From the NCBI RefSeq assembly GCF_030028105.1, contig NC_092379.1:21801309-21865308 (forward strand): DNA of 64,000 bases. Reading direction: 5' to 3'. The translations under genes and the position numbers were made by a program. Source of the stretch: Mobula birostris. Taxonomy: Eukaryota. Of the stretch, positions 23,453 to 56,140 are shown in pieces; the stretch's first letter is position 1; the number at the start of each line of letters is the position of its first letter. The notes under the pieces are model-generated. The model had not been told where the DNA came from. It worked only from the letters and a program-made list of their open reading frames with translations, and did no database searches.

Positions 23453-23776
23453 CTTGAATGTTTTTCACATCCTGCCTGACACTGGTGTTGGAGGGGGGAT
23501 GAGACACTGTGCATCTGAAAACTGAGCCTTCCTTCCACTCCTCTGTGCTCACGGTCAGGACGTAGCTGGCAATGAAAGTCCCTGCCTGTTCCAGAGCAGT
23601 TGGTCTCACACTGGTGTTGGAAGAGATCAGAGAGTCCCCTTTCTCCCAGGTGACGGTTATTTGGTCCGGGTAGAATCCAGAAGCAACACACTCGAGGGTG
23701 ACCGTGTTCCCACTCTTGGTCTCTCCCTCTGGCGGTGGCAGCAGTCTGACTTTGGGACCTTTTGTCTCCAGTGGAA
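23453..23776 (-). CDS. IgW: IgW CH8 exon (paralog of CH4)
   Basis: 324 nt, open; VPLETKGPKVRLLPPP...LECVASGFYPDQITVTW...FRCTVSHPPS; donor G|GTATGA. Confidence 0.88.
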
Positions 23777-23859
23777 CTGATGGGCAAACAATGGAAATGT
23801 CAAACATTTTTACTGAGGTAACCAACGTTGTCCATTTTAATCGCTGACCTCTTGCCCAC

Positions 23860-24162
23860 CTTTGGTACTTTTTGTCCGTGCTGATACTGGTGAGGTTGCA
23901 GAAGGTTGTTGGGCAGAGCAAGTGTACTCCACCCCACTGGTCCACTCCTCCACACTGGTCTGGAGTTGGCTGATCACTGTGTCTTGGGTTCCTTCCTCTC
24001 TCAGTTTTTTGGTGACATTTGCTTTGATTTTCTCCCTCTCATTCACCTTCCAGTGGATTTGGACCTGGCTCAGATCAGCACCCACAATCATACACACCAG
24101 AGTAGCGGTCTGGTTGATCCACATCTCTTCAATGGAGGGATTTTGGATAAAGACAGACAACT
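23860..24162 (-). CDS. IgW: IgW CH7 exon (paralog of CH3)
   Basis: 303 nt, open, same length and splice sites as CH3; about 53/101 aa identical by manual count. Confidence 0.9.
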
Positions 24163-25169
24163 CTGTAGATTAGAAATAGAAAATTTACAAACTGGACAAT
24201 ATCTGCCGTCAGCTGGCTTGACAACTTCAGCTCAGACTTATCCTGTGCAGAATTGTACATCGGAATGAAATCAGGTTTGTTTACAGAGTGGGTTGCTCAT
24301 CTCTGCTTACAACCTCTGACTGAGAAAACAAAATCAAACATCAAGGAGCTTATTTCCTCGGGACTCAGTTGGGTCACAGCTTGAACTGTGGGACATTTGC
24401 CCAGCTACATGACATTTAGCTGCTAGAATGCCAATAAAATGTGCTATCGGAGCTGTGAATTGCAATGAGAAATGCAGTTTCTGATCAAAGACAGCATTTC
24501 CTGCAACCTTCTTGTCTCAGTGCAGGTGAGAGTCTGTAGATCCATTTGTGACATTGACCTGAATCAATGAGCTGCCTCATATCTGTTCAGACTGATCCTG
24601 GGATTCCTCCAGATTGAAAATTCTGATTCTGACTTTCGAATCCCTCATGAAAAATCTCTCTTTTCATCTCTGTAACTTGCCTGCCCCAGTCAATGATTTC
24701 ACTTTGTTCCATAGACATGGCTTTGTGTCCCATCATCCACATCATTAGTTATATCAGTGAATAGTTGCAGGGCCGACAAAGATCATTGCAGGACACTGCT
24801 CACGATTAAATCCTGCTGGGTTCAGTCCCCTGTCACATGACACAGTGATAATGGAGTTGTTGATGAATGATTGCAAACAATTTCAGTCCATTAGTCTACA
24901 GCAGATCCAGGCATGGTGTGGGGGCAGCCACCTCAGGCCAGCATCGGACAGTCACTGGAAGAGCTGAGCACTGTGATCAGTGGACACGAAATAGCACACC
25001 TGGATTTGAACCACGACATCTTGAAGAACTCTCTGAACAATGACCACTAACATATCTCCTGTGGAACCAGAGGAGCCAACACTTGACCACTGTGATACCA
25101 CCATCAACAACGGTTACCGTGCCAGCACGTGGCCACACTTTGGTGAGGCCGATGACCTGGCTGTACTTC

Positions 25170-30454: not shown

Positions 30455-30840
30455 TTACACACAAGATTTAAAACTATCAGTCAGAACGAGTGAGACATTG
30501 ACCAGGGTGAGTTTGCTGTGAGATTTATTGATGCTTCGGAACAGGTTGGTTGGGAGCGACTCATGACCCACCACACAGGAGAAAGTGGTGCCGCTATTCC
30601 ACTCCTCAGGAGAAACCTTCAGCTGACTGGTCATTGTGTTCCAGCCTTTTCTGGGGTCCTTGGTCACTGGCTGGTTCACAAACCCCGTCTTCAGAAGGCT
30701 GTCATTGGCCTTCCAGACCACATAGATCTCTGTGGGAGAGAACTTGGTGATCAGACACATCAAGGTCACAGTCTGATCGGTGTCTACCTCATCTGATGAA
30801 GGGAGGAGGAGGTAGACATGAGGACGAGTCAGAACACCAC
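30455..30840 (-). CDS. IgW: IgW CH6 exon with secretory tailpiece
   Basis: Acceptor ctctgttccag|GT; Ig domain then tail KLTLVNVSLVLTDSFKSCV* with N-x-S site and penultimate Cys. Confidence 0.94.
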
Positions 30841-31442
30841 CTGGAACAGAGAGAATCTCAGTTAGAATGAATCTTCCAATTATTCCCTACTTACCTGACA
30901 CATTCTGGTCTTGCACCAACATGAACAATTTCTAAATCTGAGGGGCTTCACTTGATCTGAAACTGAAGGCTTTTCCCTTTCTGCTCATTGTTGGGATTTG
31001 TGGAGTGGAAATCTTGGACCTGCTGCATTTTACAGCTTCCAGCGAGGTTAGTCTATTCAGTTTAATCAATGGGAGTAACTGAACACAGCAACTCGACAGA
31101 AAGTGGAACTCAGCCCCTGGACTTGCATCATCCTGTGCTGTTTGTTCCATCTCCCCTGGAGCAGGGGTGGCAGTCTAAGCTGTGTACATGGGAGAGGGAG
31201 TGAGAACCTGTGGAACTCTCTCCCACAGAAAGCACTTGAAGAATTATCATCTAACATATTCAAGAATGGGTTGAATATACTTCTTCGGGTGAAAGTGTCA
31301 AAGGATATCTGGAGAAAACAGGAACAGGGATTGAATTTGGATGATCAGCTGAGACCAGATTGAATGGTTGAGCAGTGCTGGATGGTGATTAATCTGTCAA
31401 ATTGCTAAGATCAGACTCACACTGAATTCTGTCCGCACGTAC

Positions 31443-31764
31443 CTGTGTCCTTCCTGATGGATTTCTTCACTGGTGTTGGCAAATTCTTGTCCTCTATCAC
31501 ACACGAGTACTCAGCCCCACTGTTCCACTCTGCAGCAGGGACTGTCAGTCTGCTGGTGATCACGTCTTCACCTCCATTGCTGTCTGGACCCAGAGTCCTC
31601 ACCTCATCTTCCCTCTTCCTTCCGTCCACTTGCCAGGTTACAATGAATCCCTGTAAATCACTGTGAACCACCTCACACAGAATGGTCGCTGTCCTCTTAC
31701 GTCCAGATCTCTTCGAAGGGAGGTTTGCTTAAAGTTACTGAGAGGGGGGTATCTGAGCAGTCAA
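31443..31764 (-). pseudogene. IgW: IgW CH5 exon with +1 frameshift
   Basis: 322 nt between good splice sites (3n+1); TGG ACG TAA stop at 31697-31699; removing one base restores WTKRTATILCEVVHSDLQG...YSCVIED. Confidence 0.88.
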
Positions 31765-33102
31765 CTGGGAGAAACGTCACAATTATTATTTCAAAATTCC
31801 CAAATGGATGAGTTTGTCTCTGACGACCAACATTTCCTGTTCATTCCCGGTCAATGATTTGCCAGTCCCATCAAGATGAGATGAGACCAATCTACATTGG
31901 TGAAGAAAGGAATCTCCCCTTTTGAGCAGATAGGGTAATACCCTGAGCAAATGTAAATGAACAAGATTGGCCCTCAGATTGTCTTTTGCAGTTTCATGGT
32001 CACTTAAACTGTTACCAGAGACTTATTAAAACAAATACAGAAAATCCCCAGTATTTCAGAATGTGTCGGTGGAACAAGAAACAGAGCAAAATTTCACATG
32101 AAAATCTTCCAGAAAATACACTTCATATTTCAAAATTTCTGAGAAATATTTAGTTTTTGTTACAAATATTAAAATGCACTCTTTTTGTCTATCAGGTGTA
32201 ACTAACATTTGCTGCTGCTTTGTCAGAATGTAGTATGTTCAGGCCGCCCTCCTGAGGCTTCTACACATTGTCCAGGCTGACTATTCTCACACAGGAGCAG
32301 AGGGAGAGCTGCTCTGCTGGAAATTCAGTCACATCTGAGGCACTGATCGGAGGCTGGGATTAGGTTCAAAGGTAGAGGGAGGGAGCATTTTGAAGACGAG
32401 TATCAGCGAGTTGCAGAGAGTCTGTCGAGTGAAATGGTCTGGATTCTCCTCCAGTTATGAAAGTATTTTCTGGGATACTCTTATTTCTATGGTGAAAGTG
32501 TGGATTATGTTGGTTGAGAGTGGAAAACAAACCGTTGATTGGCCGATTTAAGTGCCAAGAGAGATCAAAAAGATGAAGGCATTGAGGCTGAGTCAATGGA
32601 CAAACCGGTATTCAGCTCACTTCTCGATGAGGCTTCACTCGCCTCAGCACTGAACTGACTCTGCAGCTGCGGCCTGCAGCCATCGGCACTCACCTCAGCA
32701 CTGAGCCTGGCTCCACAGCCGTGGCCTGCAGCCATCGGACTCCTGGACCGGTTGCAGTGCTGAACTGGCAACATGGCTGTGGATTTACTTTGGGGGGCTC
32801 TGCGGTTCAGTTTCTGTGGATTGTTTGTTTGAATTTTTTTATTGTTTGCACAATCTTTTTTCACACATTGGATGTTTGACTCTGAATTCTATTGTATTTC
32901 TTTGTTTTGTGACTGCCTGCAAGAAGAGAATCTCAAGGTTGTATATGGTGCACATACTTTGATAATAAATGTACTTTGTACTTTGAACTTTATCAGTTCA
33001 CTCACATAACTAAACCAAGACTGCACCATTATTCGGTGTTTACCTTGAATTCATAGCACAATGTAAACAATTTCAATAATGGGATGCATCCCAGGACCCT
33101 AC

Positions 33103-33420
33103 CTTGGAAGTTCTTCACTTGTTTCTTGATACTGCTGTTGGAGGGGGGATGAATGACTGTACAGCTGAAGACTGATTCTGTCTTCCACTCCTGTAAACTC
33201 ACGGTCAGGAAGTGTCTGGCACTGAAAGTCCACCCCTGCTCCAGAGCGGTCGGTGTAGCACTGGTGTTGGAGTTGATCACGGTGCTGCCTTTCTCCCAGG
33301 TGACAGTTATTTGGTCCGGGTAGAATCCAGACACCACACACTCCAGTGTGGCTGTTTTCCAATTCTTGGTCTCTTCCTGAGGTGGAGGCAGCAGTCTCAC
33401 CTTGGGACTTCTTATCTCGA
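33103..33420 (-). CDS. IgW: IgW CH4 exon
   Basis: 318 nt phase 1-1; VEIRSPKVRLLPPP...LECVVSGFYPDQITVTW...FSCTVIHPPS. Confidence 0.93.
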
Positions 33421-33508
33421 CTGGAATAGAAAAGAAAACAAAGGAAATGTCAAACATTTTGACTCAGGTAACTAATGCTGGCCATTTAATCACTGGTCTC
33501 TTGCCCAC

Positions 33509-33811
33509 CTTTGGTACTATTGGTCCGTGCTGACACTCGGGAAGATGAAGGAGATTCCTGAGCAGAGCACTCGTACTCCACCCCACTGAACCACTCCTCC
33601 ACACTGATCTGGAGTTCGCTGAGCACTCTGTATCGGGACCCGTCCATCTCCGCTTGATGGGTGTGAATTCCTTTAGTTTTCTCCTTCCCGCCCACGTGCC
33701 AAGAGATGTGGATATCTTCGGGATCTGTACAGATAACTGTGCACTTCACGGTAGCAGACTTGTCGATCCACATCTCTTCAATGTCGGGATTTTGAATAGA
33801 GACAGACAATT
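33509..33811 (-). CDS. IgW: IgW CH3 exon
   Basis: 303 nt phase 1-1; ELSVSIQNPDIEEMW...KC...W...YECSAQ; canonical splice sites. Confidence 0.93.
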
Positions 33812-34379
33812 CTGTGGATTAGAAATTGAAATGCTCAGAATCTTACTGGAGATATTTCCATTGGTTGTGTTAGGTCCAGGCAGATCATCAGTACTTGACA
33901 GCTGCATTTAATGCAAACAGAATAACAGGAACACCCAGGGCTGAGTCACGTGCCTCATATTCCTATAAGTTTGATTGAGAAAAGAAATTCAGAACAAAGG
34001 ATGTGCTAACGAGGTTTAGAATCCCTTTCTAATAACTGTACCAATCGGTTCACTGTGAGACGGAGCTCTGTGAGACAGAGAAGCATGCAGATTTCTCAGC
34101 AGAGACACAGCTCAGTATATTCTTTGCTTGGAGACTCAGTGCCATTGATTAGTAACAGTGAACACTGTGAATCAATGAGAATCCCTTTCTCCATCTGGGC
34201 TGAGCCTGGGATTCACTCAGTTTAATAACTTCACATCCCGACATTCCAGTCTCACTGTGGCTGTGCCTCTCCTCATCTCTGCAACCTTCACCACCCACAC
34301 AAACTTCAGACAACATTGTATTCTTTCAACTCTGCTCACTCATACACCTGCACTACTTCTGCTGGTGCCTGTGGTTTTA

Positions 34380-34740
34380 GCATTCTTGCTGACAAACACT
34401 GAAGCCTCTGTCTCACTTGAAATGAGCAACATGGTCAGAGTGTATCCATAAGTTAGAGACTGATGAACTGGCAAAGTGGGTTCAAATCCCAACCTGGTGG
34501 ATGGGAGTTTAAATTCAATTCATCAATGCTTTTTGAAATAAAAAGAAGACTATGGAGGTATTTGTAGTGTTATTCTCTGTGGTAATTTCCAGAGAGAAGT
34601 CTCGTCTGGTCTGGCTGGTTTGTGACTCCAGACCTGCAGCAACACGGCTGGAGCTGAATCACCATCAGGAATGAGGCAGCAAGTCCCTCAGTTCCAGAGA
34701 GATCAGTGATTGATGGGAAATGATAAATGAATAAAACAGC
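34380..34740 (+). mobile_element. SacSINE/DeuSINE-like SINE remnant
   Basis: B box gggttcaaatccc, core tggtctggc...gtgactccagacc, A-rich end. Confidence 0.5.
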
Positions 34741-35849
34741 TCTTTGATCAAGTGTTGGGTCACCTGTCCTCTGGGTTAGTGTCAGTTTTGTGTGATTGCG
34801 GTCAAGTGAAGTTGTTGAGGTCATCTCCCACTGCACGATCGTCAGTTCACTTACATTGCAGCTCCCTGCACTTTGTGTTCACCATTTACACACTCGGTCA
34901 CCTTCAGGCACGTGGGGTGTTTCTGCTCTTTGACATTTAGTGTGGAGGCTGATTGTGTTTGTGTCATGGCTGAGACCTTCAATGAGACTGAGAGTCAGTG
35001 TCTTTGTCTGACGAAAGAGCAGACGTAACACACACAGTTCCAGTCTAACTGGGCCGGATCATCCGACAAGGTGTGATGTGTATTTCTTCACCTTTCTCAT
35101 GTCAGTAAGATTATGAGCAATTTTCTTTTAAAACAGAAAGTCCGTGGGTATAGTCCAGATGACCATTGTTGTCGAGTAATACCACAAATATGCAAACCTA
35201 GGTGTATACTGAATGCTCATTGAATTGTGAATCTTAGTTTAATCAGCACTGTGATGTTGTTAAACATGTTTTCTGCAGGTTTCTCAGTTATGTCCCATAT
35301 CAGCACAGTCTTGATGTTCAGCAGTCCCTGGGAAATGCGGTCCCCTCATAAAACCTGACTGAGTCAAGTTCGCTCCCCTTATTACTGAATGCTGGTGTTA
35401 TTCCACAAGAAGCATATAATTCTGTCAATGCTTGGGTAATTCTATCAAAACATCCTCCTTTGTGACATTCCTTAGAGTCACTGAATTTCCCTCTTGGACT
35501 GAATTCACTGTCCGGCACGTGGGTCAATGTAACTTTAGCAATTTGTCTGATCCAGGATTTACACACAAAGCATGTCAGATTGGACAGGAGACTGGTTAGA
35601 CCCCTGAGTCTTCTCTCACCAATTTGTCTTGTTCCCAGAATTATCAAAGGGTCATCCGTCCTTTGACTGAGTCAGCCCCGTTCACCTTCATCACCTCGTG
35701 CCTCACAGCCATTGGGTGAAAAACAGGTTCCAGTTCTTGTTGACTGGAGTTAGACAAGAGGGAATCTGGCCAAGGAAACTGGAATTGGGATCTGAGTCAC
35801 ACTGAAGCAACAATGTACACAAATGAATGAGTGTATGGACAACCAGAAA

Positions 35850-36480
35850 CACAAGAGATTCTACAGATGCTGGAAATCTTGAACAACACACTCAAAATGC
35901 TGGAGGAACTGGGCAAGTCAGGCAGCATCTGTGGATGGAAATAAACAGTCGATATTTTGGGCCGAGAGATTTCACTGGTACTGGAAAGGAAGTGGGCAGA
36001 AGCCAGAATAAGAAGGTGGGTGGAGTAGAGAGGAATACATTCTGTCAGATGAGAGGTGATACCAGGTGAGGGGGAAAGTGTGTGGACGGGAGAGAGGTAT
36101 GAAATAAGAAGCTGGTAGGGGATAAGTGGAAGAGATAAATGGCTGAAACAGAAGGAATCTGACAGGACAGTGGACCATGGAGGAAAGTGCAGGAGGAGGG
36201 GAACCAAATGGAGATGATGGGCAGGTGAGGAGAACTGAAGGGATGAGGGGGTGTCTAGTATGGGGAATAGAATAAAATGGAGAATAAAGGAGTGGGGACT
36301 ATTACTGCAAGTTAGGGAATAAGTATTCATGGGATCGGGTTGGCATATGAAGTGTTGCTACTCCAACCTGAATTTGGCCTCACCATGGCAGTAGAGGAGG
36401 CCATGGACAGACATGTCAGAATGGGAATGGGAAGTCAAATTGAAATAGGTGGCCACGAGGATAATAGAAATGCGATTGGA
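35850..36480 (-). mobile_element. Decayed Penelope-like 3' end and terminal repeat
   Basis: Resembles 5000-5500 (gcagcatct..., purine-rich tract, atgggaatggga), with a degenerate hammerhead. Confidence 0.65.
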
Positions 36481-36613
36481 GAGGTAGTCAGTTTGAATCG
36501 TGTTTTCTTCTCTTTCTGTTAAACGTCAATCCCAATGGATACCAGAGGCAGGTCTGGAATCTAGTAAATGGAGTGTAATAAAATTCAATGACGAATTGTA
36601 GACAGCCAATCAC

Positions 36614-36631
36614 TTTATTTCACACTTTATT
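36614..36631 (-). terminator. Tandem polyadenylation signals in the CH2-CH3 intron
   Basis: AATAAA on minus strand at 36626-36631 and 36614-36619. Confidence 0.55.
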
Positions 36632-36972
36632 GCTGAACAATGATACTGTTGGGTAGAACCATCGGAGAATGTTGCATTGAGATTACTCTGTTGAAACAAC
36701 ATTGCCACTGGCTTCGAAAAACAGTCGGGACCTGGAAACGGAAGATTCATAGATTTAATTGTTAGATATTTTCACCTCTTTTCCCATGCTTGGGAAAAAG
36801 GGAGCCCCACATATTCCCACTTTCTATCCTCTGTATATCACATCCTATCGGGATGAGGTTATGTCAGCCATGATAAATGCATGTTGTCTCTGAACCTGGT
36901 CGAGGATCTGAGGACACAAGGTCGCAACATTCACTGGAGGATTGGGCATCAATTCAAAAATAATCCAGGCAC

Positions 36973-37031
36973 CTACAGTGGACAATCGACAGAAGAGTCT
37001 CTCAGGAAACACTGGAAACAGACTCTGGAGA
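36973..37031 (-). CDS. Candidate short-form secretory exon (VSRVCFQCFLRDSSVDCPL*)
   Basis: Strong acceptor tttgcatttgcttcag 363 nt after CH2; phase-1 reading gives a 19-aa three-Cys tail; two AATAAA about 340 nt downstream. Confidence 0.5.
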
Positions 37032-37394
37032 CTGAAGCAAATGCAAAATTGCAGAGATATTTTTAGAAGAACTAAAACGAGAAGACAGTGAAAAGGGAAC
37101 AGGGAGATCTTCTCCAGATGGTAAAGCCTGGGACGTGAGCTTTGCTCACTAACTTATTTTATTTATAACTACAAACAAAGACAACTAAAATTATTGAGAC
37201 AGAATGGACAGGTGACCTAATCTTACACCTTTCCTGCCCAGTTAAAGCTGCTGGTGAAATGAGTTGATTCAAGGTGCAAAGATCATCTGTACGTCACTCA
37301 ACAAGATTGACGGTAGGGACAGGAATTGTGTGGGAGTATTAGTTTAGTATTTTAGTACTCTAAGTTAATTAATTTTTCTTCCGATATCACTCAC

Positions 37395-37694
37395 CCTCTT
37401 GATACGTCATGTTGACCTGACCACTGAAACCGGAGGGTGCGTGATTCACTTCACAAGTATATTTCTGTTTCTTGGTCCAGTCCTGCATAGGCACTGTCAG
37501 GTAAGAGATTGTTTCAAATGTACCATCAGATCTCTGAGTGGAACGGAGAACAATCCCTTCTTGGGCAGATCCAGCTTTTTTCCAGAATACTTCAATGTTG
37601 TCAGGAGAGAATCCAGATATCACACAGCCCAGGACAGCATTTGCTTGACTGTGGATTGCCTCCCGGGATGGAACAAGGGAGCTGAGCTTTGGAG
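37395..37694 (-). CDS. IgW: IgW CH2 exon
   Basis: 300 nt phase 1-1 exon; C1-set Ig domain (LGCVISGFSPDNIEVFW...YTCEVNH), donor G|GTGAGT. Confidence 0.93.
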
Positions 37695-38644
37695 CTGTAA
37701 CACAATAAATATCTGTCAGTACATGATTGCTTTGCCCAAGTTTTGGACTTCATTCCCCCTCATCCTGGACAAGTTCCCCAATTCCAGTCCTCTCAAGAAT
37801 GTTGTTAATTTACAGCTGATCTGATGATCTGATGGCTCACACCAGCAAATGGGAGGGCTGGGTGTATAACTTGGACCTCCCAGCAGTGTGTCCCACTGTG
37901 CTATGATAATGCAGAGAGGTGGGTCATGGGGTTGAGGTGCAGACCTGCCATGATCTAATTGTTTACTGGAGAATGACTGATACCAGCTCCTGTGAGCATG
38001 TGTACATGGTGTGGGACTGTTTCCATTAGCAAGTTTGGGAAACACAATTTTACTTTCAATGAGAAAGAAGAACAGATGGACAGGAGGAAATTAATTTGTT
38101 GTAACTGTAAAGGCTTGTTCAGATCTGTGAGAAGATGGTTAAAGAAGGGCAGTGGAGTGGATTCCTTCATCACATTCACAAGGGATTGCTTTTCCCAGAA
38201 GAGGGGCAGCTGCAGGGTGGAGGGGAAAGTGCAGGAGGAGTGGGGTAAAGCTTAAATTGTCGTTCTGTGTGCAGGGGTACGATGGGCCAGCGGTCTCTGT
38301 ATGTGTACAGGAGCTGATCTGTAGGGAGGGTTTAGTGGGGGAGGGGGGGGGTGGAGAGTCTCCCGAAAGGAATGGATACAATGGAGGCAGATCAGCACAA
38401 GTTGTGTCCTCCACCCTCCACTGATACTGAGTTTCAGTGAGTTCAGGAGGACGTTTCCCCCATTTCAATTCCTTATTTTTTCTCAATGTCAATTTGGTAA
38501 GGGGTAGGGGGTAGTACTACTGTTGTAAGAGTAGATTAAAGGAGCTAGTTGCCATGCCCAGCATTATCTGACAAAGATTCCTACTCCAGATTTATGCTCT
38601 GAGATCAATGCAGCTTTTAAGAGAAAATTACGTCTCATACTAAC

Positions 38645-38938
38645 AGTGATGTTTCGGGAACACCGCTGTCACACTCGCTGCCTTGCAGGAGTAGACTTTA
38701 TTCTTCTTCCAGTCTGCCGCAGAGACTTCGAGCAAGCTGCTCATCGTGTACTTTGAATTTTGCCCCAACACCGCCGGGTATTTCTTGATTCCGCTGGTGA
38801 TGTCCCCACTGTTAGTGGACCATGTCTGACTGATGCTCTCAGGCTGATAGTCCTTGACCAGACAGAGGAGGCTGATCTTTTGGTCAGATTCTGTGTTGCA
38901 GGAAGGAGTGATGTAGACTGATGGCGAGGACGTGAGCT
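38645..38938 (-). CDS. IgW: IgW CH1 exon
   Basis: Acceptor tttcag|AG; [14 protein letters not shown]...[17 protein letters not shown]...YSCKA; N-terminal Cys typical for light-chain bond; 294 nt to a phase-1 GTTAGT donor (3' end less certain). Confidence 0.88.
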
Positions 38939-39949
38939 CTGAAATGGAAAGAAATTCACAGAAATTTCTGTAAATAAATGCATTACTGGCAGACAAAGAA
39001 GGAGACATGTTATTCACTACAATTACTACAGTACTGTGCTGAAGTCTTAGCCACATAGCTGGATTACCCCCCCCCCCCCCCAACACACACAGTAGTAACT
39101 TTATGTATTGCACTGTACCTCTGCCACTAAACAAAAACAAATTTCATGACAGATGTGAGTGAGGATAAACCTGATTCTGATGTGGGTCTCTATTGTGGAC
39201 TGAGAGTGGGAAAGGGGAGTGAGTGGGAAGCACCAGAGAGACATTCTGGAAAGATCAATAAACCAATAGTTTGGAATGAAATGACCTTGCCTGTTGTCTC
39301 AGTGTTGGGAGTGTCTGCACCCGTGCCGAGCCCTGCCCCTGCCACTCCTTCTCTGTCCCCTGTCCCACTCACATCCCGCAGCGCTCCACCCTCACCATTC
39401 CCAACATCCTTTGCTCTCACCAGATTTACAAACTCACTCTCCATTCCACATTGATAAATATGTTATTATGATAAAGTTTTAGGCACACTAGCAATATAGA
39501 TGTGCCCAAGACTTTTGCACAGTACAGTTTACAAACCAGTAATTTCTAAAATTATTCACTCCATTAAATAATACTCTCACCATTTCAACACCCAGCTGGG
39601 AATCTGTGTCACTGAGCTCAGAGGCTATGGATCAGTCTCACAGTGGAAGTTTGAGCACACAGTCACAAGTGTGCCCCAACACCCCACCCACAGCCATACT
39701 GAGACAGTCACCCAATGTCCCATGTGTTGGATTTCAGACAAAATGTCAAAGTTTTACCTTGTCTCTTCCCCAAATATAATTCCTGATTCTTAGAAGTCTA
39801 TTCGCACCAGATTGGTGGAGTTTACAGAAAGAGTAAACATTTAGCAGTAGTTTATTTGAATAATTATGATCTGTTCAGTATTGATGTTGAGTCTAAAGTA
39901 ACCCTTGTGTGCATATCTGTACCTTGTCTCCAACACCATCTGTGTGATA

Positions 39950-44639: not shown

Positions 44640-45030
44640 GCCTGGAATAGGTTGAGTGAATTTGACGTTTTCTCTTCAGAGCTTCGTAGGATGAGAGGTG
44701 ACTTGATAGAGGTGTATAAGATGATGAGAGGCATTGATCATATGGATATCGAGAGGCTTTTTCCCAGGTCTGAAATGGTTAACATGAGAGGGCACAGTTT
44801 TAACGTGCTTGGAAGTAGGTACAGAGGAGATGTCAGGGGTAAGCTTTTTTCGTAGAGAGTGGTGGGTGCATGGAATGGACTGCCAGCAATGGTGGTGGAG
44901 GTAGATATGATAGGGTCTTTTAAGAGACTCCTGGATAGGTACATGGAGCTTAGAAAAACAGAGTGTAACCCTAGGTATTTTCTAAATTACGTACATGTTT
45001 GACACATCATTGTGTGCTGTAGGTTTTTCT
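44640..45030 (+). mobile_element. CR1 3' fragment
   Basis: RRMRGDLIEVYKMMRGID...RGKLF and typical 3' UTR. Confidence 0.8.
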
Positions 45031-46202
45031 AGGACATGGGAGCTGTAATCTGCATTTAATTCATGCTCTGTGTACCCTGAGGTGATTGATGGAATCCCTT
45101 TGAGGAAGAATTTCCCAGATTTACAAGATAAATACTGATTCCATTGAATGACAGAGCAGAGAGTGAGGCCATTCATACTATTGTTTCCGTGCTTCCCTTT
45201 AGCTGAGCAAACCCAATAAACCCATTGGTCTTTCTGCTCTTCCCTGTATCCCAACAAAAGGCGGATCTCCTCCTTTTCCCTCTCTACACTCACAATTAGC
45301 CACCACCATCATTCAGGCAGTGTGTTCCAGATCACAAGTCTTCCCTTAAATACTCCCCTATTACACATTATTGACTTGAACGCTTCCCTCCCCACCCCAC
45401 CTGCACCACTCCCCACTCCCCCACCCACCAATGCAAGGCTGCCCGGAATGTGTGAAGGAATTGTGACTTCAATTCCCGGCCATACCTTTCCTGCACGACT
45501 TCCCCACTGCCTTCCCAACTCCAAAATTCTTCCCACCGCACCCCACCTCCTCACCCATCAGGGAATAAAAGTAAAACGTTAATCCCATCAATTAATTCTG
45601 GGATATTGCCGATACTTTTGCTGTATCGCGGGACGGACCTCACGCCGGACATTACATGATGGGACTGACACCCACCTGTACCCTGGGGATATTGAGCCAT
45701 CAACCAGATGATACATGTGTACACCATTCCCTCAGATTATGTCTTAATCCCATTACCTTCAACATGAAAGCAGCTGACAGTAAAACCCGATCCCAATAAC
45801 TGGACACTGAACAGATCCATTATTGTCACTGACAGGGAACAAGTTCAACTGCACTGAAACGCTCAGCCCCTGAACGTGGCTTCAGTCGGTGCTGAGGATC
45901 AGAAGCCAGACTTGAACCAAACATTGAGCTCACTCAGCACAATCGGCCGGTGTCAAGGCACAGTCTGGTGACAAGATCCGACCCCATTCCCCTGAGCCTG
46001 TTCCCGGTCTGTGGACAGGTCACTGGTGGGTGGGGTATGTACCCTTGTACTGTTACTGGGCTCCAGAGAAACCCGCCGGTTCGGGGAGATTCATGTACTG
46101 CTCTAAATATCGCACTGATTTCAGATGAATCGACAGATTCACCAAACCCGTAAATAAATAAAATACTAGCGCGTGAAGATACGATTGAGAAGTTGGTCTT
46201 AC

Positions 46203-46250
46203 CTGAAGTCACTGTCAGCGGGGTTCCTCCGCCCCAGTAGTCAAGATTGT
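46203..46250 (-). CDS. JH segment (NLDYWGGGTPLTVTS)
   Basis: WGxGT motif, RSS upstream, phase-1 donor TCAG|GTAAG. Confidence 0.95.
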
Positions 46251-46289
46251 CACAGTGCTCCGTCTCCCCATTCACCGAGTGCAGTAACT
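46251..46289 (-). other. 23-RSS of the JH segment
   Basis: Heptamer CACTGTG abutting J, 23-nt spacer, degenerate nonamer (plus strand gcagtaact). Confidence 0.82.
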
Positions 46290-46624
46290 TCACTTGCCCG
46301 TCACATCCAATAATCTCAGCAAAATGTCAACATGATCCCTGTCCGGACCGGGAGCAGCCGCTTCCTGGATTTCCATCCCAAACTTCGTCCTTGTTTCTTC
46401 CTGGCGTGTGAATAAAAGAGGCATTTTCACAGTTTTCTTGTCTGCGGACAACGGCTCTCGCCATTCCCCAGAATCAGAGTCGAATCATTTTGGGCTTTTA
46501 ATTGTCCAGAAATGGACATTTGCGCCCAGCAGTCCGAGTGAGGCTTCATGGATTTGACTCTGGGAAGCAGCAATGCGGAATCCGTGGAGACAGACTGCGC
46601 TGCAGACGCTCCTTTGTCGGGACC

Positions 46625-46691
46625 AGTTTCTGTTCAGCTCGCCATCACCGTGCACAGTGTGAGAGATGGCGGCTCCCTCCATACACAAACC
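46625..46691. other. Precise RSS signal joint: 12-RSS fused heptamer-to-heptamer with 23-RSS
   Basis: Plus strand: agtttctgt-12-caccgtg|cacagtg-23-acacaaacc; no bases between heptamers; creates GTGCAC (ApaLI) at 46650-46655. Confidence 0.92.
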
Positions 46692-47026
46692 CACCGCAAC
46701 AAAACTCTTTAAATCGGGCTCTTCGGGCGCTTCCACCGGCCCTTACCCCGGGATCCGTGGATATAAATCAGATCCCGAGTGGATAATCCGGGAGTGGGTA
46801 CAAGTTCCACTGGAGATGTGTCCGGAAGGGAACGAGACCACCGAGGAGGAGCTGTCAGGGGAAGCCCAGTGAAAGGTCCCGGTGGGTTATATCATCTCCA
46901 CTTCAGCACTGGGATGGCCGAGATTGAGACCCGCTGTGTGGGACACCCGGACACAGAGGGAGAGTTTAATAAATCCGCTGACCGGCTCTGGGATCCACTG
47001 GATTTTGGGTTGGATGTGATGAGGGC

Positions 47027-47054
47027 GGTTTGTGACCTGTGGTGAAGCACCGTG
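47027..47054 (-). other. 12-RSS following the V-D fusion (CACGGTG-12-TCACAAACC)
   Basis: Heptamer 47048-47054, 12-nt spacer, nonamer 47027-47035; points toward J. Confidence 0.9.
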
Positions 47055-47376
47055 ACGAAACTGCCACCCAGTATAGCTCTCGCACAGTAATAGGTGGCCG
47101 TGTCGTCCAGTCTCAGGTTGTTCATTTGCAGATAAAAGTTGCTGCTGCTCTTGGAAGCGGTGAAGCGGCTCTGGACTCCAGGCGCGTAGTACTTGGTGTT
47201 ACTTTCATCATAGCACGTTACCAGCCACTCCAGCCCTTGCCCGGGGACCTGCTTCACCCAGCTCATCCAGTAGCTGTTGACATTGAACCCACTGACCGCA
47301 CAGGACAGTCTGTGGGACTGCCCGGGCTTTACCACCGCTGACTCGGGCTGTGTCAGCACGATGTCGGACCGCACAC
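47055..47376 (-). CDS. IgW VH exon already fused to D-derived sequence (DIVLTQPES...[12 protein letters not shown])
   Basis: Acceptor ttattgacag|GT; canonical Cys, WVKQ and YYCAR; 23 nt of extra in-frame sequence after CAR codons, then a 12-RSS instead of the V 23-RSS. Confidence 0.95.
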
Positions 47377-47485
47377 CTGTCAATAAAAAAGAGCAGAAAT
47401 TAATAAAATGTTCCACGGTCAGAGGTTCACAAAGCCTCCGAGAAACAGCCGGTCCCGGTTGGGCGACAAGCCGCGGGACACCCAC

Positions 47486-47531
47486 CTGCCAGACAAGACA
47501 GGAGGAGACAGAGATAAGGAACGACCCCCAT
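47486..47531 (-). CDS. IgW heavy-chain leader exon ([16 protein letters not shown])
   Basis: ATG at 47531, hydrophobic signal peptide, phase-1 donor G|GTGGGT; splices in frame to the V exon. Confidence 0.93.
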
Positions 47532-47619
47532 CGCCCTGAACACTGAGCCGGACTTGGACACTTTTGAGATCGGAGACTGCAGCTCAGGCCGGCTTTGTCC
47601 GGAGCCGCAGTGAGCGCTG

Positions 47620-47627
47620 TTTAAATA
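47620..47627 (-). promoter_or_regulatory. TATA-like box of the VH promoter (TATTTAAA)
   Basis: About 90 nt upstream of the leader ATG on the coding strand; no ATGCAAAT octamer seen nearby. Confidence 0.6.
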
Positions 47628-49639
47628 GGGACGTGGGCTGTGAGTGAGAGAGGGATCCACGGTTTGAACAGCCTCTCACACACTGAAACCAGAGGCGCAG
47701 CTTCCTGTCCCCACCCACAGCAGCGATTTCAATTCCCCTAAAGGTGTTTGTCTCTGCAACAGGCGGCAGGTCAGCGGCCGTGACCAGATCCGGATTAAAG
47801 ATCTGTCACACTCTGCTCGATCCATCAATTTCAGCGATGAACAGTTTGTGTAAACTGAGACACACAGAATCTCAGCGAGAGAGAATGAGACACAATTTGT
47901 CAGTGGGCAGATATGACCGAGAGACACCAGTCAGTGGACAGAAATCCCACCCCACCCCCCCAGTGACAGGGACTGAGAAACACTGGTCAGTGGACAGGGA
48001 CGGAGAGACACCAGTCAGTGGACAGTTATTCTCCTTAGAGACACAGTGTGAGACTGTCTTTGCAGGAAAATGTATTTAGCAACAAAAAGAGTTACCACAC
48101 AATCTTCTTACTGCACCCACTCCACTAGAATCAATGTTAAACGGAGATTCCTGGTGGAAATGGGTGGAATTTACACTTTTAAGATATTTTCTCTTTCAGG
48201 GACCAGGCACCATGAACTGCCAAGTCCTCAGCAGTTCTCCCCACAAAATCTCTTTGACCTGTTTCAGCCGGTGAGAGAAACAGGGTGTTTGATGCAGGGA
48301 ACTCGGGAGCTGAAGCCACTCAACAGAAGTCATTGTTGCTGGTAACAGGGTGCTCCCCAGTAGATTGGCAGACAAGTGCAGCTGAACGGTCCGTATTGAA
48401 AGGAGACTGATGGGGGGGTGGTGGTGGGGAGGGCATACAGGATGCAGATCAGCAAGGTGGGTAATTTTGATCACCCACCCTGGTGATGGGAATACTGTGT
48501 GTCCCAAATTTTGCATCCTGGGTAAAGTATAAAGCGGGCTGATTGAATGACTCAGTAAGCCACAGCACCCCTCTCTCCAGGTGAATTGTCATCACTCAGC
48601 AGCTTTCATGACGCCATGGCAAACCAGAGCGGGTTCTGCAAACAATGAAGTACCTTTTGAAGTGGAGTCTCTGTTGTGACGGAGGGAAGGTGGGACCCAA
48701 GTTACACAGAGCAACCTCTCTGAAACAGCAATGAAGTACCAACAGATCAGATATTCTGTGATGCTGACTGAGGCATCAATGTTGGGACAGATAGTGGAGA
48801 ACTTTCCAAACCTTTTATGTCCACCTGACACAACAACCTCACCATGGCACCAATCAAAATGGTGAATCTTTTTTTTTTCTCCAAGAGGACCACAGCCTTG
48901 CTCTCAGGTTTGGAGGCTTGAAAGCCTCAGTGATCCAGAGATCTATGTTGGCCTGAGTCAGGGCCTTGTGCTTTAGCTCCAGATAGGGTCAACCATGCCA
49001 AACAGGTCAAAAGGTAGAGGCCAGACTAAAAGAGATCCAGGTTCAGAGTTTCAGGTCAGGGTTAGTGAACCTGACTAGTCAAAATAAAAAATTGTGATTG
49101 TTACGAGATGCTCCCAACCACGCCAGCTTCCGGGATTCAGACTGTCTAACTCTCTGGAGTACAGATAGCTAGTTGCAGTCCCTTTACGAGTTCAGGATGA
49201 TCCCACTAATTGGAAATCATAACTTGGGTCCAAAGAATTGTATATTTAAAGAATATCTGAACTGATGTTGGGTGCTCAATCATAAGCCCTACTCATGATA
49301 TCGTTTAGCATTTGTTTTGTGCTCAGTTTTCGATCCAGTTTGATACAGTGTCTTGATCTTTACTTCAGATACTCCAGCAAACCAACCTTGTCAACGACTG
49401 TCTTCACAGTTACGGAAACGGCAATGAAGAATCCTTCTACATCTGAATGTGATGGTATTCACTAGTCACCACCCAGGACTTGCATGGCTGACAGGAGTGA
49501 AAACTGAGAGGAAGCTACAGGCATGGTGAAGGTAGCCATGAACTTTGCCAATATCATGACCAAAAATGTTTTTTGCAATTGTCAAACCATGTACAACACT
49601 GGCAAGTTCACACAAACAACCACAGTAATGTGTCATTAC

Positions 49640-52600
49640 AGGCAACATACACTGGCATCAGTGAAAGTAGTTCGACAGAGTTTGGCAGATGAAAAGCAGC
49701 AACTGGTGAAACTATTTTCTATGCAGGAAGACAAGATGGTCAGCATCATGATGGTGTAGCTGTCATTTTGAAGAAAGGCATTGATAAGTCCCCACTGGAG
49801 TGAAAACCATTGAACAGTCGGCTGGTGAGAGTCAGGCTGAGAGTGAAGCAAGTGAACATGACTGTGATCCAGTGCTATGCTCCAAATAACAAGAGTGATA
49901 TTGAAGAAAAGGGCATCTTCTACAAACAGCAGAGATAGAGTTAACATCACGCCATGACATAATCATCATCATGGGAGATCTAAATGGCAAAGTGGAAAAT
50001 ACAACTCACACTTCACTAGGGTTATGGGTACATAGGGATGTAGAACGATCAATAACAATGGTGAAAGACTGGTGGAATTCTGTGCCATGAACTATCTGGT
50101 CACAGGAGGAACCCTCTTTCCGGACCACGAAATCCACAAACTGACATGGTGCTCACCCAGTGGACATGACAAGATCCAGATTGACCATTTGATGATCGAT
50201 GGTACATGGAGACGATGCTTGCAGGATGTAAAGGTGAAGAGAGGAGCAGATACAGGGAGTAATCACCACCACCATCTGTAATCCATTGGACAATGACTTT
50301 GGTGAGACAAATGAGTGGTGCCACATCAATTGTTGCAATCACTTAGTGCTCCTTTCTTGGGGATCCTAACTCCCTTTGTCCAGTCCTTGGACACTTGTCC
50401 CCATTCACAGATTGTTGTAAACAGAGGTTGCAGGAACCCAGTCGCAGACCAAGTACTGTGCACACTGTGATATTTACTGAGTAGCAAATCCAGAGGGTCA
50501 ACAAGGTCGGCATCAAAGTTCAGGCAGAGATCAAAAATTCCAGAGAAATCCAAAAACCAGAATCGGGACTGGAGCACATGGGGCATGAAAACAAACAAGA
50601 GCACATGGCAATACAAAAGCACAGACTGATGGCGAGGGGGAAAACACACAAAAAGACAAAGTTCAGTTGGAGGTACTGACAGACTGCTGCAACTTTTTGT
50701 TCAGCTTTGAACAGTTTGGCTTTCAAATTGTCATGTTCTGGAGCTTTGCTGTTTCTTAACGATTTAATCACAGTAACAATTGTTATGTACCCCGTAACTG
50801 GGTTGCCAAACCAGCAGAAATGGATCACTCAGTTGGAGTCTGGATTACCAGGACTAAGAAAGTTTTATTAAAGAAACAAGCAACACAGTACTCTAATCAA
50901 AAGGATAATAAATGCAACAGTTCAGCAATGATAAACACACCTGTGCACAGAATTAAGATAACAGGATCAATCAAGCTCTATCGTTGTCTAGGGGTAAATG
51001 ACCAGTTTCAAAGTGACACAAAGTCCAGTTCAATTTAGTTCAGTTTGCAGTAATCTTTGCCATGGCGATGGACAGTGGGGGGGGGCGGGGAGAGAGAGCA
51101 AAATGAATGAATATTCAACACAGCTTCCACACAGACCTTCGCAGTCAGCTTTCTGGCGAGTCCTTTGTGATGTCTCTCTCTCTCTCCTGAAGACAGGTAG
51201 CAGACCAACTGCTGATCACACAGGACAGCGAACATTTTAATCTATGTGTATTCTTGTCACGCTTCCCCCCTTTAAGGATTTTTCCCGGGGGGGCAAAAAT
51301 TACAAACGTGAATACATTATTTGATACACACACAAATATACATCTTTATCAGCTATTTGGCTAATACAGCGAGTTTGAAGTTGTCAACACCTGACAGACA
51401 GTCAGCCATCACATTTTCTGTTCCTTTTATACGTGTTATTAATAATCCCTTAGACCAGGCTCCAATTTAGCAAACTTCATAGTGGCCAAAAACACTGATG
51501 AATTGCGATCAATGTAACCTCTCATTTGGTTTTGTCCCGGACCACAATAACAAGGGTCGTCCCATTCCGACTTAGTTTTCTCTCGCAAGGGCTTAGTGGG
51601 AGGGGGAGGGGTAGTGACCACAGAGTTATTGCAAAACTTCCTACAGTACCCCACCATCTCCAAGAGCCTTCTGAGGGCCCTCTTGTCTGTCGGGGTTTGG
51701 AGGTCAGCGATAGCCTGCACTGTAGCTTGTATCGCTGCCAGCTGCCCCTGTGTCACCACAATTCCCAGGTAAGTGACCTTCGTGTGGCCGAACTCATTTT
51801 TTTCAAGGTTCACTCTCAAGCTGGCTTCAGACAGCCGTATTAAATTGCCAATACACACCTCTGTTTTCGTCAGCCCTTTAGTCACTGAATTACTCATTCT
51901 ATATGATTGTTGCTTGCTAGGCTGACCTAACAGACACCACCCAACGTCCCAGTTCTTTGCATCGCCTCGGGACAATCAAACACACGGGTGCGAGTCGTTT
52001 AATTGCTTCTCCTAAAGAGTCGCTTTGTTCGGGGATTAAGGGAGAGACCTTATCAGCAGACCTGGCCAAAACAATAGCCTTCTCCCATCTGGTGGATACC
52101 ATACTCATCTTTTCAAAATGGTTTTTTTCTCTTATCGGGGGGACCCTAGCTTCATTGATTTCCGCGCTAACATGGACTAGGTTTGTTAGCATATCAAAAG
52201 CCTGTGACCGTCTCAGTTCGCGTCGGTCATAATCAATAACATCCTTCCCCCTGGGCAGCCGGTAAACCTCTTTCATGATTCCACCAACTGTTCCCTCCAG
52301 TACCGCAAAATGTCCACCGGGGGGTACCTTGTGGGCCAGGTTAAAAACCTCATCCCCATAACTCTTTTGCACCACCCCTCATTCCGCATCTGCAGGTACG
52401 GTACTTGGTCTCCCTTTCTTCCTTAGCACTTCCTCCTCCACCAAAACCATCAGCCCCTCGTCTCGCTCCTGCGTCTGCACAAATTCTTTCCTGGCTAATG
52501 TTACGTCCGTCCCAGCTCCCTCACTACCTCTTGCCTCACTACACTCCTTCTTTTCACTTTCTACCCCCTTCTCGTACAAGGCTGGCAGAAACGTCTCAGC

Positions 52601-55600
52601 TAAATTCACTACCGCGGTCCCGTGATGAACCTGTGAGTCCATGGGCGGGGCCTCAATGCTGGCAGGCTGACCTGTCAATCTCACGACTGGGAACACGATT
52701 CCCCCGGCGACGTCATTACCAAGCAAGACTTCCACGCCTTTCATCGGTAATTCGGACCTCACCCCGATCGTGACTAGTCCAGAGACCAGGTTGCTTTGTA
52801 AGTGTACCTGGTGCAAAGGGACTGACTCTGTCCCTTCCCCAACACCTTGGACCTTTACCTCCCCAGTCTGGGTCTCTGAGCTAAACTCTAATACACTCTT
52901 CAGTATTAGTGGCTGACACGCTCCCGTGTCTCTCCAGATCCGCACTGGAACTGGTTTTAACCCCTCCTTTGCCGACACCAATCCGGCCGGGGTAAACCTC
53001 TCGCGCCCTTCCTGAACGTTGGCAGACCTGTCCTTCCTTAGCGGTTCGTTTACCAGCTCGATACAGCCAGTCAAAATCGCTGTTTTTCCTTTTCCCGTCT
53101 CCTTCTTTGGGGCAAAGCACCTGGACGCAAAGTGTCCGGCTTTCCCGCAATTATAATAGACGACCCCAGGAGACTTCCTGCCAGACTGCTCCCGGTCTAC
53201 CTTATCCCTCTCACTAGTCCCCGGCTTACTTTCTGACTTTTCCGGCGGACTCTCCCCGCCGTCCTGACTACCCTTCAGGTAGCCTTTACTCGGGGCAAAC
53301 TTCATTTTTTGCGTCAACGCATACTCATCCGCTAACTTAGCAGTTGCGGCTAACGTGGCTGCCTCTTTCTCATCTAGGTAGGGTCTCATACCCTCAGGGA
53401 CACAACCTTTAAACTGCTCAATCAGGATCCGCTGTAGCAGTCTGTCATAATCCCCATCTACCCCCTTCGAGGCGCACCAACTCTCACAATATGTCTGCAT
53501 CTCACGGGCAAACTCTAAATACGTGCGGTCCCACTGCTTCCTCGCATTCCGGAACCTCTGCCGGTATGCCTCCGGGATCAACTCATAAATCCTGAGGATG
53601 GCCTCTTTCACCACCTCATACCTCTGGGCATCTTCCGCTGACAAAGTTGAGTAAGCTTGTTGGGCTTTCCCTTTCAGTACACTTTGAAGCAAAACAACCT
53701 ACTTATCCCTCGGCCATTCCAGCCTAACCTCCTGGGTCGCCCGGAACCCTCCACCTTGGTTCGGCACGAGACCCTGCTCGGCCCTTATCTTTAACTTCTC
53801 CAGCTCAAATTCCTTTTCCCTCTGCCTCTCTCTCTCTTCTCGCTCCCATTGCCTCTCTTTCTCTTCTCTCTCCAACTGTTTCTCCCTCTTTCTCTCTGGC
53901 CTTTCTAACTCTCTCTCTTGCCTTTCTAACTCTTTCTCTTTCTCCCGCCTTTCTAACTCTCTCTCTTTCTCCTGCCTTTCTAATTCTCTCTCTTCCTCCC
54001 GCCTTTCTTGCTGCTTCTCTTCATGTTCTAACTGTCGTACCCGGAACTCGTGCTCGAGTCTCAGTTTTTCAAGCTGTACCTGTACCGCGTCTCCGGCAGG
54101 TTTTTCAATAGACACCACCCCCAGCTCGCCTTGGGGAAACACACCTTTAGATGCATAGTGCTCTATGATAGCTCTGTGTATCTCCTCTCTCCTCATTGTC
54201 AACTTCCCCTTAGCAAGATTCAACAGTTTGACCACAGCTACCAATTCCGATTTCCTGGCATCCTCTAATGCCTCCAAGGTCGGCGCCTTTATAAATTCCT
54301 CAGCCTCCATTTCTGCTGTTTGTCTTTTCTTTCTTTTGGGAATTTTGACCCAATCAATTTACTCCGTCCCAAATTTAGCATTCAAAATCGCGGACGAGAA
54401 CCCCACTTATGTTACGTACCCCGTAACTGGGTTGCCAAAACAGCAGAAATGGATCACTCAGTTGGAGTCTGGATTACTAGAACTAAGAAAGTTTTATTAA
54501 AGAAACAAGCAACACAGTACTCCAATCAAAAGGATAATAAATGCAACAGTTCAGCAATGATAAACACACCTGTGTACAGAATTAAGATAACAGGATCAAT
54601 CAAGCTCTATCGTTGTCTAGGGGTAAATGACCAGTTTCAAAGTGACACAAAGTTCAGTTCAATTTAGTTCAGTTCGCAGTAATCGTTGCCATGGCGATGG
54701 ACAGTGGGGAGGAAGGAGAGAGAACAAAACGAATGAATATCCAACACAGCTTCCACACAGACCTTTGCAGTCAGCTTTCGGGCGAGTCCTCTGTGATGTC
54801 ATCTGAGGTCACCAACTGTGACCCTTCCATTTCCAGATACGATCGTTTCCCTGCATTGAACCTGGCACCCAGGCAAGGGTGGACACACACCAGGTTCCCG
54901 CTGATCGTGCCTTTCCACCCTGAGCGTCTAAGGCTTGATCCCGCAATCAGCCATCCAAAAGCTTCCCACCGGCTTCTGAGAGGCCCACCACTTCCAGGGT
55001 CTCGTTACCTCGGGTGTCGTGTGTGTCCTGCCTTAGCGAACCTGTCCCTTTTTATCCCCCTGCTGGGGTATCGCCTGTTCTTCACTTCAAACAGTTCAGG
55101 GTTCAAAGGGGGAGCCGCTCTTGACAGCTCTCCTTCCCCTTCATTACACATCTCCAAATGCTGCTCCATTGTTTTCCTTATCTCTCTCTCTCCTGAAGAC
55201 AGGTGGCAGACCAACTGCTGATCACACAGGACAGTGAACATCTTAATCTACGTGTATTCTTGTCACACAATCTCTTCCTTCTTGAGTGGATCTGCGTTGA
55301 TATCAAGGTCCTCTGCGTCCATTCAGTAAATCTCTGAAATGCCCTGTCCATCATTCTTCGTGCATTTGTCAAAAGTAGACAGTTCTTAACTCTCATGGGG
55401 CTACTAGGTCTGGCTTGGAACTTTCCACATACCAATTTTGAAATCGTGTATATATTTTCCTGATCACGTCAATTGGCTGCTGCTGTGGCCAGCATGCAAG
55501 GTCTTCCATGTAGACTCTTTTATCCATTCTTAAAAGCTCTTCACATTCTTGCTAGCGTCAGTGAATGCCAGTTGAAGTTTCACCTTAATTTGTGTTGACT

Positions 55601-56140
55601 TTGCATCGAACACTTTCATCCTGATTTTTTATCTTTCTTCTAAGGCTGTCCCATGTTTCCTGCTGTATGCATTCTTCGTTTTTCTTTACAGCTCTGTAAT
55701 GTAGACAAGCCTCGCTGATCTCCTTGAACACTGACACAATCTGTTTCCACATCGTGTTGATCTTGCACACTGACACAACCTCGCCAAGGCCTGAAATCTG
55801 TTCTTTAAGTTGAATGATGACAACAGGTCTCACACTGGTGTCCTTGAACTTCTCAACATCAAGACGTCTTTGTACATGTGCTCTGGTCCCAGTGGTTCTC
55901 AGCATGAGTGCTTGAAGAAGGAGCAAGTTGGCTTCAGGAAGAATAGAGGCTCTGTCAACCAGATCTTCAGGCTATGCAACATCACAGAGCAGTGCACAGA
56001 GTGGCAGAGACAACGATACATCAATTTCATGGACTTTGAAAAGGCTTCTGATAGCATCCACAGGGAGAGCCTCTGCTGAATTCTCAGATCATATAGGATC
56101 CCTTCCAAAATTGTCCAGCATACCTTGAGTTTTCATTTCA
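49640..56140. mobile_element. RTE-clade LINE, internally inverted and interrupted by the LTR element
   Basis: Endonuclease on plus (IQCYAP, TWCSPSG...QIDHLMI) to about 50275; linker and RT start on minus (about 55900-55272, 50780-50282); RT resumes on plus (KEQVGFRKNR...DFEKASDSIHRE). Confidence 0.75.
50781..55267 (-). mobile_element. Gmr1-like Gypsy LTR retrotransposon, internally deleted
   Basis: LTRs 54410-55267 and 50781-51261; 4-bp TSD CAAT (50777-50780, 55268-55271); tRNA-Pro-like PBS 54381-54405; PPT 51262-51273; gag with CCHC knuckle (YNCGKAGHFASRC), protease (RDTGA), then integrase and RT remnants. Confidence 0.92.

Follow-up and report, generated by a model that had tools for sequence, protein, structure and literature searches.

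The window, by which we mean the whole 64-kb stretch of ray DNA analysed here, contains an Ig heavy-chain gene in whose interior, at positions 46625-46691, the heptamer of a 12-RSS is fused directly to that of a 23-RSS, with zero bases between them. We consider it probable that an ancestor underwent inversional V(D)J recombination in its germ line and that this fusion is the signal joint which the event left on the chromosome. On the plus strand, the 12-RSS is composed of a nonamer (AGTTTCTGT, 46625-46633), a 12-nt spacer (46634-46645) and the heptamer CACCGTG (46646-46652), after which the 23-RSS begins directly with the heptamer CACAGTG (46653-46659) and continues with a 23-nt spacer (46660-46682) and the nonamer ACACAAACC (46683-46691). 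The fusion CACCGTG|CACAGTG (46646-46659) creates a GTGCAC core. Compared with ACAAAAACC, the nonamer of the 12-RSS (minus strand ACAGAAACT) agrees in 7/9 positions and that of the 23-RSS in 8/9. As in a signal joint, the heptamers stand head to head, the spacers measure 12 and 23 nt, and the nonamers lie at the correct distance; moreover, in unrearranged copies each of the two RSSs adjoins a coding segment, namely D1 in the case of the 23-RSS and D2 in the case of the 12-RSS. The first-pass annotation had described a 12-RSS and a 23-RSS fused without an intervening base, and had placed a signal joint between V-D and J. Both descriptions hold, the former being read directly from the sequence: this is a 12/23 signal joint, with the V-D fusion and its 12-RSS (47027-47054) on one side and J with its 23-RSS (46251-46289) on the other.

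The arrangement is not one that chance would be expected to provide. The 14-base core CACNGTGCACNGTG has one copy in the 64-kb window, both strands counted, and in 100 dinucleotide-preserving shuffles its mean count was 0.00, with a match in 0 shuffles. We also scanned the whole window for RSSs, defined as CACNNTG followed after 11-13 or 22-24 nt by a nonamer. Such a loose definition returned 20 RSS-like sites in 64 kb, whereas exact 12 or 23 spacing together with a nonamer of at least 7/9 left only 3 sites in the window: the two halves of the joint and the 12-RSS at 47027-47054 beside the V-D end. The observation at 46625-46691 is confirmed, and we regard the fusion as a genuine, non-chance signal joint.

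The gene that surrounds the joint lies on the minus strand, where the order is leader, V, a D1 remnant, a 9-nt D2 remnant, a 12-RSS, a 335-bp spacer and the joint, followed by a spacer of 367 bp, a 23-RSS, J and then six C exons; read on this strand, the joint itself is 23RSS|12RSS. The leader exon (47486-47531, ATG at 47531-47529) is separated from V by an intron (47375-47485) that RNA contigs skip (47374 to 47486) and that has GT..AG ends on the minus strand. A few hundred bases upstream of the leader, at 47873-48025, there is a 69-nt direct repeat of 80% identity. The VH exon (47077-47374, minus strand) has an open frame whose translation ends in ..YYCAR (..TGTGCGAGAG); it has VH homologues of up to 66% identity and matches the Pfam V-set family (PF07686). 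Fused to it, as coding joint 1, is the D1 remnant CTATACTGGGTGG (47064-47076, minus strand), and the V frame stays open through the V-D junction. The next nine bases (47055-47063) are a putative D2 remnant, ACGAAACTG, with its sense on the plus strand and thus inverted relative to the gene; the minus-strand reading is CAGTTTCGT, and the 9-mer adjoins the intact heptamer of its uncut RSS. This RSS, a 12-RSS of the form CACGGTG-12-TCACAAACC (47027-47054, minus strand, nonamer 7/9), ends the V-D1-inverted D2 unit and faces the 23-RSS of J. Beyond it lies what the paralogue contigs described below identify as the former D1-D2 spacer (46692-47026), now in plus orientation and inverted relative to the gene; the scan for CACNNTG plus nonamer detected no further RSS-like sites within it. 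Then comes the joint, made of the former 3' RSS of D1 (46653-46691, plus strand) and the 3' RSS of D2 (46625-46652, minus strand), the latter in its original place and orientation. The D2-J spacer (46290-46624, minus strand) is unrearranged and common to D2-bearing paralogues (contigs 46517/46529-46652). It leads to the 23-RSS of J (46251-46289, minus strand), which has its heptamer at 46251-46257 and a weak nonamer (5/9) at 46281-46289, and to the JH coding segment (46203-46250, minus strand, ..DYWGGGTPLTVTS) with a splice donor after 46203, at which 155 RNA contigs leave the stretch. When 45001-48500 was self-compared against the window, no second cluster was found. Long open frames resembling reverse transcriptase and gag are present at 1-22000 and 51400-56000, and retroelement copies occupy most of the space around the cluster.

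The origin of each signal can be traced through paralogues. We compared public contigs with 45900-47700 at 85% likeness, using DNA from run X1 (the probable assembly sample, organism A), from run X25 (another study, sample and organism label, organism E) and from run X9 (a third organism label, organism B), as well as RNA from run X2. Recombination partners can be identified in this way because contigs of unrearranged paralogues break off at the recombination points; the evidence on orientation consists of short contigs and loose ends of 30-110 nt. For the 23-RSS half of the joint, an 80-nt X25 contig matches 46652-46688 (1 mismatch in 37), that is, the 23-RSS, and upstream of 46652 it reads ..GGCGGTGTAT CACTGTG ACTATACTGGGTG, a 5' heptamer followed by D1. 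In other words, the order along this contig is CACTGTG, D1 (ACTATACTGGGTGG) and the 23-RSS of the joint. The same contig overlaps by 30 nt another one (46659-46774) that enters the spacer, and because of this overlap D1-23RSS-spacer can be taken as the unrearranged order, in the plus orientation of the window. Unrearranged D1 is accordingly in plus orientation, whereas the same letters (12/12, against the loose end of the organism-E contig) stand on the minus strand in the V-D junction. Together, these contigs show that the 23-RSS of the joint would normally follow D1.

For the 12-RSS half, the match of three X1 contigs ends at 46652, past which they read GTGGACAT and CATAGTG-CTTCACTGCAGG-TCA.., an unrearranged D2 with its 5' RSS. 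Their order on the gene strand is 12RSS-D2(ATGTCCAC)-12RSS-spacer-J, and since they run from the D2-J spacer through the 12-RSS into D2, the 12-RSS of the joint is the 3' signal of D2, unmoved. The spacer of the paralogue D2 5' RSS agrees with 47036-47047 in 10/12 positions, yet the two stretches are oriented oppositely when the D2-J spacer is taken as reference, which shows that the 12-RSS at 47027-47054 would originally have been the 5' RSS of D2. From the other side, an X9 contig is contiguous over 46805-47055 and passes from the spacer into that 12-RSS in the plus orientation of the window. Paralogue V contigs diverge exactly at 47077 into the heptamer of V itself (loose end ..CACTGTGT). 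The RSS of V was also considered as the 23-RSS partner and was rejected: its spacer differs from that of the joint after about 14 nt, so the 23-RSS of the joint comes from D1 and not from V. The orientations of the D1, D2 and spacer contigs imply an inverted interval from 46653 to about 47063, just as the first-pass annotation had proposed.

Based on these assignments, we propose the following scenario. On the gene strand, the ancestral cluster would have read V-23RSS, 12RSS-D1-23RSS, 12RSS-D2-12RSS, 23RSS-J. The 3' 23-RSS of D1 would have recombined with the 3' 12-RSS of D2, a pairing that obeys the 12/23 rule because D2 has a 12-RSS on both sides, and since both signals point the same way, cutting and rejoining would have inverted the piece between them. 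This piece (46653-47063, 411 bp) would comprise the 23-RSS, the D1-D2 spacer, the 5' 12-RSS of D2 and D2 itself. The blunt signal ends would have been ligated exactly at 46652|46653, and the coding ends would have been joined tail to tail at 47064|47063 (D1|inverted D2). The fusion of V to D1 would be a separate, ordinary deletional join, made either before or after the inversion; judged by the paralogue ends, this join removed a single base from each of V and D1, without any addition. The product would be a partly pre-joined V-D1-D2inv gene that ends in the former 5' 12-RSS of D2, aimed at J. As this terminal 12-RSS faces J, a single 12/23 deletion to J could complete the gene in lymphocytes and would at the same time discard the signal joint, although normal junctional processing would still be needed because the untrimmed join is out of frame. 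The data themselves establish the anatomy, the identity of each RSS by means of the paralogue contigs, the flipped orientation and the occurrence in a second sample. We infer the enzyme, which the 12/23 rule and the exact fusion of heptamers suggest to have been RAG, as well as the germ-cell setting and the order of events. Two statements in the literature count against the inversion reading: that shark Ig segments share one orientation, necessitating deletional rearrangement (review PMC5192425), and that inversional germline joining would be hindered, needing ligation at two sites (Lee et al. 2000, PMC2193156).

The inversion model is at its weakest at the 9-mer ACGAAACTG (47055-47063). Among the sampled paralogues, D2 reads ATGTCCAC or ATATGCAC, which the 9-mer does not resemble; with the first nine bases of unrearranged D1 (ACTATACTG) it agrees in 7/9 positions. 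At 47063/47064 a D1 with 12/12 identity abuts nine nucleotides that are attached to the inverted 12-RSS and match no known D2, and it is from the adjoining RSS and the position that we infer them to derive from this cluster's own D2. Either the D2 of this cluster was D1-like or the junction has a hidden history. In this lineage of clusters, the two D segments may have arisen by a recent duplication.

Could the joint be a product of lymphocytes or of the assembly rather than a heritable allele? Signal joints are exact, so that independent somatic inversions in B cells would share one joint sequence; DNA for fish genomes is often taken from blood; and in the run of the assembly sample the contig depth over 46693-47058 is low (2.6-19). 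Nevertheless, a somatic lymphocyte rearrangement or an assembly error in the reference seems very unlikely to us. A single 496-nt X1 contig (46611-47106, 1 mismatch) bridges the joint and runs uninterrupted through the spacer, the 12-RSS and both D remnants as far as the V end. The joint is also bridged by a 100-nt X25 contig (46589-46688, 1 mismatch), which extends 64 nt beyond it on one side and 36 nt on the other, and the depth of this contig (4.3) equals that of neighbouring germline sequence (2.7-6.2 for contigs of the same run). This sample comes from another study and bears another organism label. The V-D fusion is present in the assembly, and it is the joint itself that the second sample displays at normal depth. 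A rare product restricted to B cells could not attain germline-level depth at such low coverage. We also rejected the idea that the joint reads derive from an excised circle, because signals pointing in the same direction give no circle in cis. The occurrence of the joint both in the assembly and, at ordinary depth, in a second sample with another organism label points to a germline, heritable joint that is not lymphocyte-derived, in agreement with the germline event that had been postulated from the sequence at first.

Other routes to the same arrangement have to be weighed as well. The topology and the order of elements would be identical if D1 and D2 had been joined by deletion and the excised signal circle had then been re-cut by RAG and recombined in trans at the 3' 12-RSS of D2, leaving a new signal joint and a pseudo-hybrid joint. 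Reinsertion of signal circles by the V(D)J recombinase has been documented in mammalian cells and in vivo (PMC1820826), and it would make CAGTTTCGT a forward D2, which is compatible with the data. However, this route calls for two rare germline events, one of them intermolecular, and a processed, hairpinned end would be expected at the 12-RSS heptamer of the circle, whereas CACGGTG at 47048-47054 is intact. A single intramolecular inversion accounts for everything without a circle, and we therefore regard reinsertion as improbable.

The piece 46653-47054 has outward-facing heptamers at its bounds, which is how a fragment flipped through hybrid joints would look, and one might imagine a Heterodontus-type flip of the RSS-bounded D1-D2 spacer followed by the exact loss of D2 from between the signals. 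Such a flip, however, leaves D2 between the 23-RSS and the 12-RSS, where there is no base here, and leaves nothing between D1 and the 12-RSS, where there are 9 nt. Exact removal of D2 with both heptamers whole would require a second RAG event between signals 8-9 bp apart, and at so short a distance a RAG event is judged sterically implausible. With the bases wrongly placed, and with the Ds not separate but D1 fused to 9 more nt, hybrid-joint inversion was rejected; we consider it highly improbable. Being bounded by RSS heptamers, the same fragment also resembles a RAG transposon. Yet its flanks (CCGTG vs ACGAA) lack the 5-bp (or 3-5-bp) target duplication, on which ground transposition was rejected, and the fragment would have to have inserted precisely at another heptamer. 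The chance expectation for the fused core is 0.00. The likelihood that the structure stems from RAG-mediated transposition of a signal-ended fragment or from a chance juxtaposition of RSS-like sequences is next to nil. Germline inversion thus remains the reading that we prefer.

Transcripts related to the cluster were found in the X2 RNA. Many contigs, which represent somatic VDJ transcripts from this V/J family, skip from J (46236-46248) to the V end (47074-47083) with 24-40 differing inserted letters. Because these V-to-J joints start at 47074-47083, the listed ones come from V genes that are not pre-joined. Several VDJ contigs hold D1-like (ACTGGGTGG) and D2-like (ATGTCTAC) letters in forward orientation. 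Elsewhere, 222 bases within 46099-46322 are skipped, with TTCTCT instead, in one X1 DNA contig and one X2 RNA contig (depth ~1000), on account of which there is a transcribed paralogue without the J segment and its RSS. Most of the J-bearing RNA contigs (155) continue past the J donor (46203) into CTACTGCTATAG and sequence like 37677-37695. What follows the donor matches the start of the 37.7-kb exon (1 mismatch in 19) and not the 38.9-kb exon; in expressed relatives, J seems to be spliced to an exon of the 37.7-kb type.

The constant region consists of six consecutive C1-set exons (30458-39143, minus strand), the sixth of which ends in secretory-tail-like sequence. In PDB sequence searches, the C exons match constant domains of Ig heavy chains, with the IgNAR C domain 4q9c as the best single-domain match (E 9.5e-29); these matches do not discriminate between isotypes. 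Protein searches with the V exon and one C exon retrieved no named elasmobranch IgW homologue; apart from one unnamed Logan fragment, the hits were all distant VH proteins from snake, gar and turtle. The cluster had initially been labelled IgW. The six C1-set exons, the last with a secretory-tail-like end, and the cluster organisation fit this label, and the gene is consistent with the IgW isotype, but the label has no named IgW homologue among the retrieved proteins behind it. Further downstream, past the secretory-tail-like end of the sixth C exon, an additional pair of C1-set exons is found at 23346-24169, with 55% and 66% protein identity to the pair at 33.8/33.4 kb. It could be either a duplicated exon pair or a V-less remnant of another cluster.

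What does such a joint mean for the origin of pre-joined Ig genes? In cartilaginous fish, germline-joined VD-J, VD-DJ and VDJ genes are established, as is RAG activity in shark germ cells (PMC2193156, PMC5192425, PMC8355894); for the germline-joined genes, Kokubu 1988 is the source as cited. The joined genes are attributed to RAG acting in germ cells (PMC2193156, PMC5192425). Deletional cases lose the reciprocal product, and consequently the RAG view of pre-joined genes rests on coding joints only. In the ray cluster, both products of what would be one event are preserved next to each other, which makes retroposition or gene conversion hard to invoke. If our reading is correct, inversional joining, deemed unlikely in co-oriented clusters, has reached the germ line, and a D that has a 12-RSS at either end can be incorporated in reverse, giving its 5' signal to the fused V-D. 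It would also mean that nature does contain the intermediate through which D segments have been proposed to arise and RSSs to be swapped, namely a signal joint that is inherited. Nonetheless, the advance is limited: germline RAG joining is already widely accepted and is here confirmed and extended, not overturned.

It is tempting to go further and to regard the joint not as a passive scar but as a working D of zero length (23RSS|12RSS) between a 12-RSS and a 23-RSS, even though we find this rather doubtful. If it were so, the V-D of a B cell would join the 23-RSS of the joint and then J, with an extra round of junctional processing, and the ray cluster would be a living example of the Lewis-Wu step towards D segments. 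Alternatively, a working joint might compete with J and thereby tune the frequency at which the cluster is completed.

Inversional V(D)J joining, which keeps the signal joint on the chromosome, is familiar from mammalian Ig kappa V-J joining and from inverted D segments at IgH. The ray cluster shares with these a 12/23 pair pointing in the same direction, what would be a coding joint at one end and an exact GTGCAC signal joint at the other. To our knowledge, however, the known inversional joinings with a retained signal joint are somatic events in lymphocytes, whereas the ray joint is present in an assembled genome and in a second sample. In addition, one partner in the ray event would be the 3' RSS of a D that is flanked by two 12-RSSs.

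The resemblance to the germline-joined Ig genes of cartilaginous fish lies in the genomic V-D fusion, in the coding-joint-like trimming and in the RSS left for one-step completion. The genes described so far are deletional and their reciprocal signal joint is lost, whereas here it is kept and one D would be inverted. In the searchable, non-subscription literature, we found no description of a signal joint retained in the germ line of a cartilaginous fish; what came up on the subject was Lewis and Wu 2000, a 2021 hypothesis paper and unrelated reviews. Lewis and Wu 2000, citing Kokubu 1988, describe a Heterodontus cluster in which the D1-D2 interval was inverted by hybrid joints (PMC2193153). 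The Heterodontus case, from horn shark, is likewise a RAG-type inversion in the germ line, and it concerns the same D1-D2 interval of a heavy-chain gene of the cluster type. It differs in that two Ds exchanged their RSSs without being joined to each other, with neither a signal joint nor a coding joint, whereas in the ray D2 would have moved with the inverted piece, so that D1 and D2 would be fused, as their signals are. Signal-circle reinsertion (Vanura et al. 2007, PMC1820826) has in common with the ray cluster a chromosomal signal joint, a joint between an RSS and a coding flank and the order of elements, but it is somatic, intermolecular and mostly directed at cryptic RSSs, while in the ray one intramolecular event would be enough.

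Lewis and Wu propose a scheme in which signal joints that formed in the germ line, with bases inserted at the junction, gave rise to D segments (PMC2193153, Fig. 2B ii); the legend of their Fig. 2 names shark evidence for events i and iii, not ii. Within this scheme, a heritable joint such as that of the ray has the make-up of a zero-length D: its 23RSS|12RSS has a 12-RSS on one side and a 23-RSS on the other. The two differ in that Lewis and Wu invoke intercluster recombination and junctional insertions, whereas the ray joint would have formed by inversion within one cluster and has no insert, its use in lymphocytes being hypothetical.
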